DNA of 64,000 nt from Bugula neritina (lineage: Eukaryota; Animalia; Bryozoa): NCBI GenBank assembly GCA_964035545.1, contig OZ037767.1, forward strand, positions 7,146,707 through 7,210,706. The letters run 5' to 3'. Position 1 is the first letter of the stretch. Each line of letters opens with the position of its first letter. The translations under genes and the position numbers were made by a program. Below the pieces are notes generated by a model. The model worked only from the letters and a program-made list of their open reading frames with translations. It searched no databases and had not been told where the DNA came from. Shown here in pieces: positions 15,261-22,704 of this stretch.

Positions 15261-16640
15261 CTTTGAACTTGGTCTTGAAGCCTGCAGAAAAGTTGAAGAA
15301 ATTCAATTGCAGAGATGTAATAATATACAATAACTATACGATCAATTCAAATACTTCAATCAACTACTAATGACGGTAGCGATAGAATATTAGGAAATTC
15401 AAGGGATTAACTTATTAGTTATTACCTTGACTTTGAACAAGTAGAATAAATCATTTGCCAATGAACCTCAAAATGGGCGGGTCTCAAAAACTGAAACTGA
15501 AATGAAATAGATGGAATCGTCCTCATTCAGCGTTAGTAACTTGTAACCCCTCTTGAAAGTTGAATACATCGCGGTTTTCGATTCACTCCGATCTCAAAGC
15601 ATGATTCGATTTGACCTCTAGATGGAGGCGCCTACAAAGGAATTTTAACTTGATTAGCGAACATAACATCACACGGTCTTGCCAATCGCCAGATTTGATT
15701 ATAACCAGTATGCTCTTCACCTCTTCAACTACAACTTGTTGCATGGTTGTTAGGGTACAATGCCATGCAAATCCAAATAGGGAACCAGCAAACTTGCTAT
15801 CAAGCTTTTGCAATATGCCTGTTCTCTTATTGTAGTTTTTGCAAAGCAGCTGTAGCCTGTAGGCCTTCCTTTTATCATTTATATAGGTATGTCATATGAG
15901 TTGTGAATGTAATATAATAGATTATACCATGGCACACGGTGCATGCACTTAGATACATGTTACAACTTACAATATACCAGTTCTGCATGTGGGCTGTGTC
16001 TTCAAGCAAAGTGATTATTGACTTATACAAGCTTGAATACAGCTGCTGTATTTGCTGTTGCATTAGGTTATCTAATAGATAAATCATTCTAATGATTCAC
16101 TTGCAGCTTTTTTTAGAATAGTATGTAAGTTTTTCAATGCCTATACCTCTATAACATGGCTTGAAGCTTTTCATTGCAATAAAAATGCTATAAGAAGACA
16201 ACTCTACTTGAATAAAGTCTGACAATTTAAAATTATTATATTTAGAATTCACAATGATACTATTTCTATATTATTTTAAGTATATAATTAGATAATTAGT
16301 TATTACTTGTTTTGGTAGAATACATTAAATTATAAAAAACCTTTCTATCATAAAGACCTGACAGACCATTATACAACAACTTCTTTATAGTCCATCTAGC
16401 AGCAATCTATTTCAGCAACACAAATATGGCCTTTTTCTCAGAAAAGTTCTACTGTTTTATGCTTGGAGCAAATAAAATTTGATTGATGGTTAAAATTTTG
16501 TTTAGTTTTATCAAGTTGCTACTTATTTAGCATGCAGGTTAGAAATTGTTCGCAACTAATTGTAAGACGGCACTGAATCTTGTTTGTTGCAAACTGTGTG
16601 TATATAACCTTATATATGTAGAGCTACTTGCACATGTACG

Positions 16641-16647
<7 letters not shown>

Positions 16648-16674
<27 letters not shown>

Positions 16675-16796
16675 TGTATGTATGTATGTATGTATGTATG
16701 TATGTATGTATGTATGTATGTATGTATGTATGTATGTATGTATGTATGTATGTATGTATGTATGTACGTATGTACGTATGTACGTATGTATGTATG
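16648..16796. repeat. (GTAT)n microsatellite
   Basis: Directly visible. It generates the YVCM/YIHT pseudo-ORFs. Confidence 0.95.
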
Positions 16797-17021: not shown

Positions 17022-18972
17022 TTATTGTTGTCCCTGGCTGTTATTCTTCTCTAGCAATTCAATCTTCTCCTGATTCGATGGGAAGACATCAACTGGCTCA
17101 GGAGACTCAAAGCTCTGAGAAGCCTTCAACTCTTCCATAATTATGACACCAGAGAATCTCACATTGTCTTTATAGGCAGCATTTGCAGACACTCCAAAGA
17201 ACTCCTGTAATTGTATAAAATGTTAAGATCAACTATATATTCTAGTTGCCTTTATATCCTAAACCAATCAACTGACACTTATAAATTATACATGCTGAAT
17301 AGATTTATAGAGTTTACATTATAAGCCATATATACTTGTTTAATCATCTTTTCGTGGTCTAAATACAATAAGTAAAATTTCAAAAAATAATAAAATTTGG
17401 AAAGTGCCCTTGTTTTATTTGTTAAAGTAGTCTGAGATAGAGTTGCCTTACCCTGTTTGCCCAAGAGGCTGGCTCAGGGTTCACGTGATGACGTTGATAG
17501 TAGAAGGCAGCCCCTGCACTATGACCTGCTGTTTGAACGTGTACATAAGGAAGAGATATGTCTCCCACTTTCTTCATATCTGAGGAGTTTATTAGACGTA
17601 GAGAATCATTTCCAAAGCATGTACCATTGTAATGCTGAAATACATATACATAGAAAAAATTCAAGTAGGTCTTCGCTACTAATCATCAAACAATTTGTGA
17701 AACAACTCTCCTACTGGGGGGGGGGGCAGTATTTTACAGCTCAGCTCCCAATTTTTCAGAACTACACTGTCTCCCCTAACACTCTGTCAGTTTTTAAGAT
17801 TCACCAGCCCCTCAAGTTCTTGGGAGGTAGCCTAATACCCCACTACACTCAGGACCAAGCTAGTGATAAAAATGCTGCCCTCATTGGGAATAGAACTGAA
17901 GTTCTCCAACTTACAAGCTAACATTCTACCTGTTAAACTCTAGGGCTATTGGGGTATCTCAACATCACACAATTAACAACTAGGCAAATATTTTGCAGTG
18001 TGACTGTATTTTATTATGCTTCAAGACATTTATCTGAAAACATTCTAATAATGACAAGTAATAATAATGAACTATTATCTTGTTTTATGTAACACATACA
18101 TATAATAATAATATAACTCTTTCCATATAATCAGTCACCTGCTGAATTGTGTCAAATATTCCCTGCATAGACTGGTCTGGTTCATGGCAATCAGCAGCAG
18201 TAGCAGAGTTTGTGAAGATAAAAGCTATGGTATCATTACTGTATGGCAGCTTCATGTTTTCTCCTTTATATCCAGGATAATTCAGCAGAACATCTCTATT
18301 GTAATCACCTATCTATTTATATGGAAATTATAAATGCTGCATGCTAGTAATTCACCTTACTATGCAATATTATAACTGTAGCTTGACTGTCATACGTACA
18401 CATAGATGTCATCTTATAAAGAAGAGTACAAAATGTTGCAAAAAACAATTAGGTTGACTTACATTCTAGTAGCAACACCCATTTAATTGTTTATCCATGT
18501 TAAGAAAATATTTTCGCATCTATATACTATTACATTTTTTTAGTTATAAAATAATAGATCTATATTAACCCGTTGTCATGTCTGCGATATGCAATAAATC
18601 AATCAATAGAGAATGTTTTACATTATCTTCCCAGCACTGGCGATATAGCCCAGAAAAATAATTTGTCTGCAGAAATTCACAATATCATAACATTGCATCA
18701 TATTTTATTTGAGGAAGAATGAATATCAGTGATTAATTAAACCTATATATATTATATTGGTAAGAGATTATTACCTTGAAAGGGAAAGCAGCCATTCCAG
18801 CAGTTGCTGCTGTTTCATTGACATATTGCGACACATTATCTACACTAAAAATAATATGTTTATACAATGATATATTATTATATTATTACAACTTGACGTT
18901 TTATGGCTCACTTAAATATTTAAGATATATAACTTTAGGTAGAAACTCATACCTCAATCCGCCTGCATTCAT
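17022..18972 (-). CDS. MMACHC: Divergent MMACHC/CblC-like protein (~209 aa from the first in-frame Met; true N-terminus uncertain)
   Basis: Exons 18953-18972, 18775-18844, 18139-18312, 17452-17634, 17022-17204. Translation ...GMAAFPFK|IGDYN...MKLPYSNDTIAFIF...PYVHVQTAGHSAGAAFYYQRHHV..WANR|EFFGVS..FSGVII..PEPVDVFP..EKIELLEKNN aligns to human CblC [84 protein letters not shown]. The three phase-0 introns fall at the human positions. Probably a paralog rather than the orthologous enzyme. Confidence 0.8.
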
Positions 18973-20297
18973 GGTATTGTTAGAATTGGAAAAGCTTAGT
19001 AATATTTAGTACTTGCTCACAAAAATTATGCAAGAAAACTGTTGCTAAAAGGAAGTTCACAGCACTTTGGTAATTGATATTGATTTAATAATTGTAGGCA
19101 GTAGGAACTATTAGGAAGAGAAAGAGGATAACCACTACATTGTGTCATATTACAAACTTGCTACATCTGTATAATGACAATATTGGTTTTGAATTTTGAA
19201 ATTGCCCACACACACACGCACGCACAAATAACACACGCACACGCAGACAGACGCGTGCATGTTGCACTACTAGAAAAAGCACAATATTCAAATGTCACAA
19301 AACTTTAGTTAACATAACACGGTTAAAATATTATCAAACACCTAGTTGTTACTAATAGTTTCATGTAACAAATAAAGACTCCTTAGGTAAAATGCTACAC
19401 TAGCTATCTATTATATATGTATATAGCTGTAAAACACAGATTCAAATCTAGTAATTTGCTATTGACTACAATGTTGTGCCACTGTTACATGCAGTACATA
19501 CCCACATCTGTATATCCCAACGCTGTATAGAACTATGTCAAAGACTAAGGATAAATTCTAAAAAATAATATTTTAACAATTAAAGTATAAATGGTGTAAT
19601 TACTGTATATTATCTTAGCTGCATACTTTGAAAAAAAAAAGTAATGAATTTATAGTGATATCAGAATTTTGACAATACCAAAAATAATTAAAAGAAATTG
19701 GCAACAATTGTAAAAAATTATGTGTAATAAATAAACTGAGTCAACCTCCGCATTCGTTTTGTTATTTACAACTGAAATTCATTTGATCTGGCTTTAACCT
19801 AATAGAAAGGCACTAAAAGTTAACAATTTCATGCAAGAATACCATTTCCCACCCAATTTTTCTAAAATGTCTAAAAGTAGGATAAAGAAATTAGATTTGC
19901 TGTTTGCATAATAATATTTTCTTATACTGACAAAAATAATTTTTGAGTAGATAAACCCTTGTTACTCACAGTATCAAAAAGAGAGATTCCTCACTATTAT
20001 ACCATCATTAAATAAAGTACTAGTTCAATCTATACTTAATAAATAAAAATATAAAAAATGCAGGATTGTAAAACAGTAACAACTATGCCCTGTCCTTACT
20101 GTAACTATAATATAAGGGAACTAAATACTCACATTCCACAGAAGAGCAAAGTTAAACATGGTTGTTCAGCAGAGGACACACAGAATACAAATGCTCTACT
20201 AGCTGGCATATGTCAAGGTAATAAATAGGCAAATGTATAAACCATGAAGCTGATTGGATGAATCATGTACAGAAAACATGCCTGCAATCCACTAGAA

Positions 20298-20636
20298 CAG
20301 GGCTGTCCAACAGGCGGCCCCAGGGCCAGATGTGGCCTCCAGCCCACATTTATGTGGCCCTCCAAGGCATAAAGCTACAATTAGTTTTTACATGCATACA
20401 TGAATTAGAGTGAAAAACACTTTTTAAACGTCTTATTTCTATACATGCTACAAAACATGCAGTCTGCAGTAACTATTTGGACCTTATTGTGTAATGTTCT
20501 ATGAGAATTTGGAATAAATAAATTTAAAAAATACTGATGCTGTGGCCCCCAGCTCAAGCTGAAGCTTACAATGTGGCCCTCGCCATGAAATATTCCCTTT
20601 CAGTGGCCCTCGGTCTGAAAAGGTTGGACACCCCTG
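20298..20636. mobile_element. hAT-family MITE
   Basis: Termini CAGGGCTGTCCAAC...GTTGGACACCCCTG, internal GTGGCCC repeats, perfect 8-bp TSD cactagaa. Confidence 0.9.
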
Positions 20637-22704
20637 CACTAGAACTCCAAAGTGGTTGCCCGCAAGATAGTGTAAGGTTTTGACCAATGATGACCAATAT
20701 GCACGTCCTAATATAATTTAGAGGCATGTTTTTAAGATAAACTGAGATAAGAGCTTTTATAATTTCAATGCCAAAAAATCTATATTATTAACAAAGGTCG
20801 CTGATCAAAAGTATAGTTTGAAGTCAACATAACAGTTTTGGCAACCAAACGAAGGAATGACTCAAATCTGCAGTTTATATAACCAAAACAAAAATGACTT
20901 TTTTAAAGCTTGATCTTTGCCTTGAATTGTGGTGCCTTGGTTGTGCAGTCATTACAACATTAGGTCTTGTGTTATCTTCATGACCCTCGATCACACAGCA
21001 TATATAAAAACTAGCAGCATTGTATCAACAGTTTTAGCACTAGCCTATTGCATCTCTCAACATCCGTCTTTGGGAGTTATCCCATTAGCCAAGTATAAAC
21101 TGAGTTACATAACCCACCGACCTTTGAACTTTTGAATGAGCTATCAATCATAATATTTATATCCTTTTTTACCTCAAATGAAATTTTAACTATGTTTAGT
21201 TACGCAGTAAAAACTTCATCCATTTATGCAATTGAACATTAGTGCATAGTAAATAGTTACATAAGCTGCAATGTATGAAGCAATGTTGTATGGTGTAACT
21301 GCTAGAAGTAGTCAAATTAATTAACCTCCAACAGATCATGAGGTTCATGATGTATGCAATGGATTCTAAATGTCTATACAATTACTATGAAAACAGAATG
21401 TAAAAGCTATGGAGCCAGTTTAAATCTGGTGAATATCAAGCTTGAGTTTCCAATAACTATTGGACATTGCTAGGAAATTCTAATACACTGTAACAAACTT
21501 CACAAGCCATTTATAGAAGACTGCCAGACAATAATAATTGTTACTAGGTTACTAATATAATGCAAATGTTTAATGCACTTTGTCAATATGTACCAAAAAG
21601 TAATTTTGAATTACAATACACAAACTAGATGTTAAGAGCATATAGCAAGACATGCGAAATCAACTCCCAAATATGTTTATTAATATATTATTATAAAATT
21701 CAAAGTGAACATTGAAATTAGGGCGAAATCATGCAGACTATAGCAACAGTCTCTAATATATTTTATTCTAAATAATACTATAACATTTTATACTAAGTTA
21801 AACATTAACCACAATCTGAATGCATTCATGCTAATTTATTATAACAAATATTAATTCATATGTACATACTATATTAATAAATAAAAATCATTGCTTCTAC
21901 TACAAGAGAGTTGAACAAATTAAAATAACAGGAGAACCATTTCTCACAGTTTCTAAAATAGTTATAATTATGTTACTACAGAAGTGTCAATGCAGCGTGC
22001 AGTATAAATGCCTCATACAGCACACAATATGGCCTCATACAGTACTATTATTTGTTGTGATATATGTACATCATAGCAAATGCCTTTCCGAATGTTTCCC
22101 AGGAGTCAGTCAGCACCAGGGAGAAGCATCAGCATGAGAAATATGGCACTAGCCATCATCTGTCAGTGGAGTTGTGAGCTAAACGAATAACAACTGAATA
22201 TAATAACATATAGTCTACGTACAAGTAGGACATGCATTAGCAGTACAACAGGAAATCTGAGTTTATATATTTAGTATTATATAAATTAAACTTCATGATA
22301 CCGAGCACATCCTCTAGACTTGCGAAAACTCTTCTGAGGTTTACATTTATTTAGATTTAAGTTACTATAGTCTATACTACGCAAGCGTACAAGTTAGCAT
22401 AGCAGGTAAAGCCTCTATTATACAGTACAGTGCTCCTTTCATCTCACTAACCTACGGGTTCCCGAAACCTTATTTCGTGACATAGTAGAATACTGGATTT
22501 AACTCACGGATTTGTTTAATTTGACCATTTTCCCCTTTACACACATATACATAAGCCACAAAACAGGGACTCAAGCCCTTCTCATAATCTATAGAACTTT
22601 GTGAGAAAATAAACTATGATATACAGAGATAGCACTATACAAGATGATAGATGAGTATATCAGGTAATAAACTCCAAGTGAGTTGTTACAGCCTGCTGCA
22701 ACTT

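Follow-up and report, generated by a model that had tools for sequence, protein, structure and literature searches.

Introduction

MMACHC (CblC) has been treated as a single-copy cytosolic enzyme that is "not part of any gene family" (PMC9464900). The residues with which it binds glutathione have been named, R161 is needed for productive coupling, Q131 forms a hydrogen bond with cobalamin, and the variant G147D abolishes binding (PMC9464900). The four-helix cap (aa 185-234) and the protrusions Pr1 (69-77) and Pr2 (104-116) are part of the human cobalamin pocket, and in MMADHC the absent or different cap and protrusions are thought to explain the lack of cobalamin binding (PMC4705923). Among characterised active CblC proteins the shortest has 266 residues, and human truncations that remain active drop only the last 47 (PMC11910325). 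In invertebrates the uptake and movement of B12 outside the cell are poorly known, and in the literature we found no paper on a secreted or truncated MMACHC paralog, nor on the handling of B12 by bryozoans.

Here we describe a gene on the minus strand of the window, by which we mean the whole stretch of 64,000 nucleotides of bryozoan DNA that was analysed. The gene is the single member, in this bryozoan genome, of an MMACHC paralog family specific to the lineage, and these truncated MMACHC paralogs are an undescribed bryozoan family. The explanation that we tentatively put first is that the lineage-specific paralog would be a non-enzymatic binder, most likely of a corrinoid, that would be secretory in the relatives, the copy in the window being open and leaderless.

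Results and discussion

Gene model of the locus

The locus lies in AT-rich animal DNA with 34% G+C. Five exons on the minus strand, all joined at GT..AG introns, span 17022-18972 and give an open frame of 630 nt, corresponding to 209 codons and a TAA. The first coding piece of this model (18953-18972) starts at ATG 18972, encodes MNAGGL plus 2 nt and ends at the donor gtatga. This piece corresponds by homology to the 3' portion of exon 2, the leader exon, in the relative from Watersipora and in a further genomic copy, L010, and the phase-2 donor has been kept (AG+T in the window, AA+T in Watersipora and AG+T in L010). Exon B (18775-18844) encodes (S)VDNVSQYVNETAATAGMAAFPFK with two sequons, and its end is the intron position at which canonical exon 1 ends (...YTFK). 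Exon C (18139-18312) has 58 codons with an NYPGxKG insertion and is without the canonical PxMF...DPxDxC segment. Exon D (17452-17634; 61 codons) contains the cobalamin-contact block QTAGHSAGAAFYYQ at 17494-17535 as well as three sequons. In the last exon (17022-17204; 60 codons and the TAA at 17022-17024) the degenerate strand NAAYKDNVRFSG (17148-17183) stands in place of the H-P-x-F-G-G-W-F-A-x-R-G strand, and is followed by one cap helix, EKIELLEKNN, after which the protein ends with EKNNSQGQQ.

The window exons were searched and aligned singly, and the exon-wise pieces were pooled only for the sequon and codon-difference counts. Pfam MMACHC (PF16690; gathering cut-off 27 bits) matched the last two exons separately with 29.3 and 28.9 bits. 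A whole-genome profile search detected no cap-like exon (profile positions 185-216) near the gene. The protein has two cysteines and seven N-x-S/T sequons, as compared to a mean of 1.9 expected from residue shuffling (P(>=7) about 0.001). The canonical MMACHC copy of the same genome has none, and since the relatives have only one or two, the excess of sequons is private to the window copy.

Most of these features had already been pointed out in a first-pass annotation of the window, which read the locus as an intact ORF of the MMACHC family with the B12-contact block kept, the GG motif and R161 lost, a deletion around PAMFDRALKP, a stop ahead of the WRDW/YRD segment, seven sequons and a possible Cys pair. 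Each of them was found again in our model, with all eight splice dinucleotides intact. The annotation had also placed one more sequon, NNT, upstream in frame; it exists, in the stretch ILLSFSNSNNT (18973..19008, minus strand), but this stretch is only 11 codons long and is preceded by an in-frame TAA (19006-19008).

An (ATGT)n microsatellite of about 41 copies occupies 16634-16796 of the window, approximately 230 nt downstream of the stop codon. Within the intron between exons C and D, 17700-17960 includes a run of G and a segment for which a single further match, at 67% identity, occurs in the genome (C6:13436948-13437116); this may be an old repeat.

A canonical MMACHC in the same genome

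A profile search of the 216-Mb assembly located a canonical MMACHC on another contig (G000:C5:2840055-2841510), with scores of 115.5, 53.9 and 50.0 bits over three exons. This gene has four exons and shows YGGWFAFRS, an HWKDNRFRD cap, the R161 equivalent and a normal C-terminus. Compared exon by exon, the window copy is 25-35% identical to it. No third MMACHC copy was detected in the assembly, either in the profile search or in a search with an orthologue as query. The window and canonical copies share three introns, which agree in alignment position and in phase, in line with the three intron positions that the first-pass annotation had recognised as those of MMACHC; we take them to be the positions of human MMACHC too. 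Because the introns are shared in position and phase, the window copy is an old DNA-level duplicate and not a retrocopy.

A processed pseudogene was ruled out by the retained introns, and the canonical copy on the other contig ruled out that the window gene is the only MMACHC of the genome. With four GT..AG introns and 209 open codons, the coding exons show neither the intron loss nor the stops or frameshifts of a pseudogene, and the sole defect is in what is presumed to be the leader. At a distance of about 0.7 kb on the upstream side of the canonical MMACHC and head to head with it, G000:C5 also carries on the minus strand (L002 303-581) an exon with a Rossmann-type GAGGIGCE motif (...KLFVVGAGGIGCELLKNLVLVGF...), which resembles the N-terminus of a ubiquitin-like activating enzyme subunit.

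A bryozoan family of truncated paralogs

When exon D alone was searched against 1.84 billion representatives, two strong matches were obtained, P0002 and P0001. The former (227 aa) is 54% identical to exon D, and the latter, an exon read-through from a genomic contig, is 66% identical. A word-index search with P0002 led to XP_067941454.1 (P0009, 228 aa) from Watersipora subatra, a cheilostome bryozoan, which is labelled by NCBI as "cyanocobalamin reductase / alkylcobalamin dealkylase-like". Both P0002 and P0009 carry PF16690. With a family profile, its own members P0002 and P0009 scored 436-486 bits and the next match, a canonical MMACHC, 97 bits, which sets the family sharply apart. Additional genomic copies were retrieved by contig look-ups and one metagenome scan; L010 has all exons, whereas L011/L012, L013-L017 and L022-L026 are partial. 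In a quick maximum-likelihood tree, which does not resolve where they attach, the paralogs grouped together as a single clade that a very long branch separates from all of the 47 canonical sequences. In the flanks that were compared, no synteny was detected with the Watersipora and L010 loci.

The relatives are only 42-52% identical to one another, yet they have the same truncation and have lost the same residues. Exon lengths are conserved across the family, with 58 codons in exon C of all four complete members, and so are the NYPGxKG insertion, G-L-(D/K) in place of GGW, and G/A/S at the R161 position. The stop falls at the same position in the window, Watersipora, P0002 and L010, the complete members ending in ...ERLRVLNEYNHIFG, ...ERIRLLNEYNSFGRK, ...ERIHLLNEYNTFGY and, in the window, ...EKIELLEKNNSQGQQ, each directly before the stop codon. 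Between members pN was 0.32-0.41 and pS 0.75-0.87; synonymous sites are saturated, so neither a dN/dS ratio nor a branch test is given. A pN this far below pS nevertheless shows long-term purifying selection on the family. The first-pass annotation had proposed a paralog with lost catalytic residues and targeted losses, and the recurrence of the truncation and of the substitutions in the relatives, together with the low pN, supports this at the level of the family, as it does losses that are targeted and ancient.

The reading frame of P0002 is uninterrupted in three independent contigs (L007-L009), and in a relative of 80-90% identity the genomic contigs have introns where the family has them. 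P0002 is therefore derived from spliced mRNA, which shows expression of the family in one species or more.

In Watersipora subatra (OY755164.1; L006 12051-14450 and 17471-19871) the orthologue has two nearly identical tandem copies of its last three exons. The NCBI isoforms X1 and X2, which differ at three amino acids, have their 5' exons in common and continue into one or the other block. Two family types were also found within the same metagenome assemblies (ENA ERZ1740054, ERZ1740059, ERZ1740068 and others), represented by L013-L017 and L022-L026. One type is P0002-like, and the other is the P0007 type (...VHVQTAGHASGNAFYYQKPQVVDPPSTWDGK, then SINNEFRLGTVF), which has N at the H151 position, as in the window. 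These may be two subfamilies in one host, or the assemblies may come from mixed hosts.

Residues lost and kept

Human numbering was anchored on the variants in PMC9464900 and on a HMMER alignment to PDB chains. All the glutathione residues are lost in the family: R161 is substituted (S in the window, G/A in the relatives), R206, Y215 and R230 lie beyond the stop, and the D77/D80 segment is replaced, with the DPxDxC segment absent. Of the four helices of the cap (human aa 185-234) the family keeps the first alone, and the model of P0009 has a single helix after the core (H213-227). Because the family proteins end near human residue 200 and are without the arginine triad, it is very unlikely that they dealkylate cobalamin, and the database label given above probably misstates the activity of the family.

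In contrast to these losses, the nitroreductase-like core and the cobalamin-contact block have been retained. Thirteen columns do not vary among the 50 canonical and paralog sequences compared, and they are concentrated in the cobalamin-contact block; they are the Y of GDYN, the Q, T, A, H, G, A, Y, Y and Y of the central block, and the equivalents of G147, H151 and G155. Although overall identity is only approximately 30%, the family shows hardly any change in the Q-T-A-x-H..G-x-A-Y-Y-Y-Q block and in the G147/H151/G155 equivalents. In the window, the block Q118-T-A-A-H122...Y129-Y130-Q131 is present in the exon D motif given above, and G147 in FFGVS. The strand H151-P-x-F-G155-G156-W157 reads H-x-x-F-G-L-(D/K)-T in the relatives and N-A-A-Y-K-D-N-V in the window.

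The fold was assessed on the Watersipora orthologue P0009, for which the AlphaFold model had a pLDDT of 91.9, with helix 2-19 at lower confidence. In Foldseek the top 20 PDB matches of this model were all MMACHC/CblC (E down to 7e-15, TM 0.58-0.68), so the MMACHC fold named in the first-pass annotation was recovered in the orthologue.

Leader sequences in the relatives

At the N-terminus P0002 has MFPSILLLADLVLSVSLSIITAG followed by RC, and P0009 has MYALYLIADLLLTFVFSVFISPG followed by CN. The Kyte-Doolittle maxima over 11 residues within the first 30 residues were 2.67 for P0002 and 2.84 for P0009, as compared to at most 1.2 in four canonical N-termini, and in the P0009 model the leader forms a separate helix, the one predicted at lower confidence. 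Both proteins contain two cysteines and no more, each at a conserved position, and one of the two immediately follows the leader. Such leader and cysteine features are marks of a putative signal peptide or signal anchor; an anchor is also possible because the leaders contain an acidic residue, an aspartate, and have no basic n-region, with no basic residue at all. Since two full-length relatives have a hydrophobic leader that canonical MMACHCs lack, a secretory route is plausible for the family, and judged from these N-termini the relatives of the window copy likely take it. The Watersipora leader is split over two exons, the first encoding MYALYLIA and the second being a 50-nt exon, DLLLTFVFSVFISPGC, with a phase-0 acceptor and a phase-2 donor. 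L010 has a 53-nt equivalent of this second leader exon.

The window copy is the odd member

The N-terminal region of the window copy was found to differ from that of its relatives. At 53 nt before the donor, the distance seen in L010, the window reads gtactaa followed by ATATTACTAAGC; the acceptor dinucleotide is AA (19006-19007) and not AG, and the TAA is in frame. The counterpart of the leader residues is polar (ILLSFSNSNNTMNAGGL; hydropathy maximum 0.12), and the post-leader cysteine of the relatives is a leucine. A candidate first exon, MFNFALLWN with the donor gtgagt in phase 0, lies at 20133..20159 on the minus strand and is similar to MFPSILLLA in P0002 and to MYALYLIA in Watersipora. 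Scanning 4 kb for an ATG followed by hydrophobic codons and GT turns up about ten such candidates by chance. The candidate cannot be joined in frame to a canonical AG acceptor without meeting a stop, and each of the five AG sites identified by eye upstream of the ATG runs into a stop when joined to a phase-0 first exon. ATG 18972 is thus the only start that gives an open frame. The N-terminus from this ATG is not hydrophobic, and the window product, if started there, is probably not secreted. Secretion had been suggested for this protein in the first-pass annotation; the hydrophobic leaders of the two relatives speak for that idea, whereas the polar counterpart, the AA acceptor and the in-frame TAA speak against it for the window copy. 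The sole join that keeps the frame, a weak donor CT/gtggaa with the acceptor ctaag/C, was considered unlikely.

A partial duplicate of window 18289-20127 was detected approximately 58 kb away on the same contig and strand (L027 7256-9115, equal to G000:C3:7104255-7106114). It covers the 5' part of the gene as far as nucleotide 24 of exon C, with intron 1, the first coding piece and exon B included, and its identity to the window is two-tiered, being 95-97% over 19099 to 18289 and 80-88% over 20127 to 19100. Exon B has three differences from the window, all of them synonymous, and the homology ends within a few bases of the donor of the candidate first exon. Just upstream of that candidate exon, inverted GC-rich arms (...ggctgtccaacaggcggccccagggcc... 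/ ...ggccctcggtctgaaaaggttggacacccctgc...) enclose an AT-rich core at 20260-20700 of the window, which looks like a small inverted-repeat transposon.

These data bear on the possibility that the window gene is a recently disabled or decaying copy, with a leader exon that can no longer be spliced in frame, a last exon that is drifting, and a frame that is open for lack of time. Decay of this kind would account for the AA acceptor with its TAA, the stops behind all five AG sites and the lost cysteine. It would also fit the last exon, which is 31-39% identical to the relatives while the relatives share 49-54% there, and which holds 13 of the 18 departures of the window copy from family-invariant residues, including the H151 and G155 equivalents. 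In a collection of 5.8 billion no protein of 125-397 aa matched the window copy. However, the 209 codons have no stop or frameshift, the splice dinucleotides are intact, ATG 18972 is in a good context with an A at -3, and exons B-D are as close to the relatives as the relatives are to each other. Overall, the window copy keeps 74% of the positions that are invariant in the other three members, as compared to 78-86% when each of the others is set against the remaining three. The duplicate L027 has the same AA/TAA state in its 95-97% identical proximal part, so this state is neither an assembly slip nor a very recent change; it is older than the divergence of the two copies, and the gene has stayed open since, which is weak evidence against decay at 2-3% change per lineage. 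Taken together, we regard a decaying copy as rather unlikely. The evidence on the window copy points both ways, the 209 intact codons and three normally conserved exons favouring a working leaderless version, and the broken leader and the divergent last exon favouring a gene on its way out.

Proposed function of the family

In the reading that we put first, the family would no longer dealkylate or decyanate cobalamin, would enter the secretory pathway in the relatives, and would bind a ligand, most likely a corrinoid, through the core surface that it has kept, without acting as an enzyme. Such non-enzymatic corrinoid binding is our best guess, because the cobalamin-contact block is the most conserved part of a fast-evolving protein. 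However, the family is without most of the cap and has altered protrusions Pr1 and Pr2, and these changes to the pocket argue against a simple retention of cobalamin binding. In the window copy, three of the 13 universally invariant residues are also replaced (Y to F, H to N and G to K).

The same changes suit another possibility, that the family is functional and binds no corrinoid, the nitroreductase-like fold having been reused, as in MMADHC, for protein-protein contact or for another small ligand. MMADHC provides the precedent of a protein with no cap, different protrusions and no cobalamin binding (PMC4705923), and the new conserved NYPGxKG loop and the very long branch in the tree point in the same direction. 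MMADHC, on the other hand, is poorly conserved relative to MMACHC, whereas the bryozoan family has kept the contact block and the G147, H151 and G155 equivalents, and retention of the block at so low an overall identity is hard to explain without the same binding surface. We consider a non-corrinoid role the less likely reading, but a serious rival. Finally, an enzyme that works in the ER lumen or outside the cell without cap or glutathione, such as a flavin-dependent decyanase or reductase, could be imagined from the retained core, given that decyanation with FMN/FAD has been attributed to the N-terminal flavodoxin-nitroreductase module (PMC9464900), but it is highly improbable with G/A/S in place of R161 (PMC9464900), an end well short of any active truncation (PMC11910325), and a supply of NAD(P)H and flavin outside the cell that would be doubtful.

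Non-enzymatic corrinoid binding could be taken one step further. Bryozoans may have turned an MMACHC duplicate into a secreted or luminal corrinoid carrier or scavenger by removing the lid and the glutathione pocket and adding a signal peptide, an idea that we regard as speculative and doubtful. If it were true, a B12-binding protein outside the cell would have arisen in bryozoans independently of the vertebrate transcobalamin family and in convergence with it, and one possible use would be uptake from food or from bacterial associates. A conserved and expressed family that has kept the cobalamin-contact block and shed the chemistry, and that has a secretory-type leader in the relatives, could inform which parts of the CblC fold suffice for corrinoid binding.

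Comparison with known systems

The closest described system is human MMACHC/CblC (PDB 3SC0, 3SOM, 5UOS), which belongs to the same Pfam family (PF16690) and, as judged by Foldseek for the Watersipora orthologue, has the same fold. The cobalamin-contact block and the G147 equivalent are common to both. The bryozoan family differs in that it has no GGW, has G/A/S for R161, has the DPxDxC/Pr1 segment replaced and the NYPGxKG loop inserted, and stops after the first of four cap helices, so that R206, Y215 and R230 are absent. The relatives also have an N-terminal hydrophobic leader, in contrast to the cytosolic MMACHC (PMC9464900).

A shortened C-terminus is shared with the truncated MMACHC isoforms, namely those of mouse, the human 1-235 constructs and bovine t-bCblC. 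These lose only the disordered tail of approximately 40-47 residues and remain active, with the cap entire (PMC9464900, PMC11910325, PMC4133868), whereas in the bryozoan family the cut falls inside the cap. MMADHC/CblD is a nitroreductase-fold relative of MMACHC with no four-helix cap and no enzymatic activity, and is a precedent for repurposing of the fold (PMC4705923). It is remote in sequence and intracellular, while the bryozoan family is a clear PF16690 member with the cobalamin-contact block. With the P0009 model as query in Foldseek, CblD came far below MMACHC (E 0.03). The vertebrate secreted carriers intrinsic factor, transcobalamin and haptocorrin are unrelated in fold and ancestry to MMACHC-type proteins, and the bryozoan family resembles them only in its proposed role, the extracellular binding of a corrinoid.
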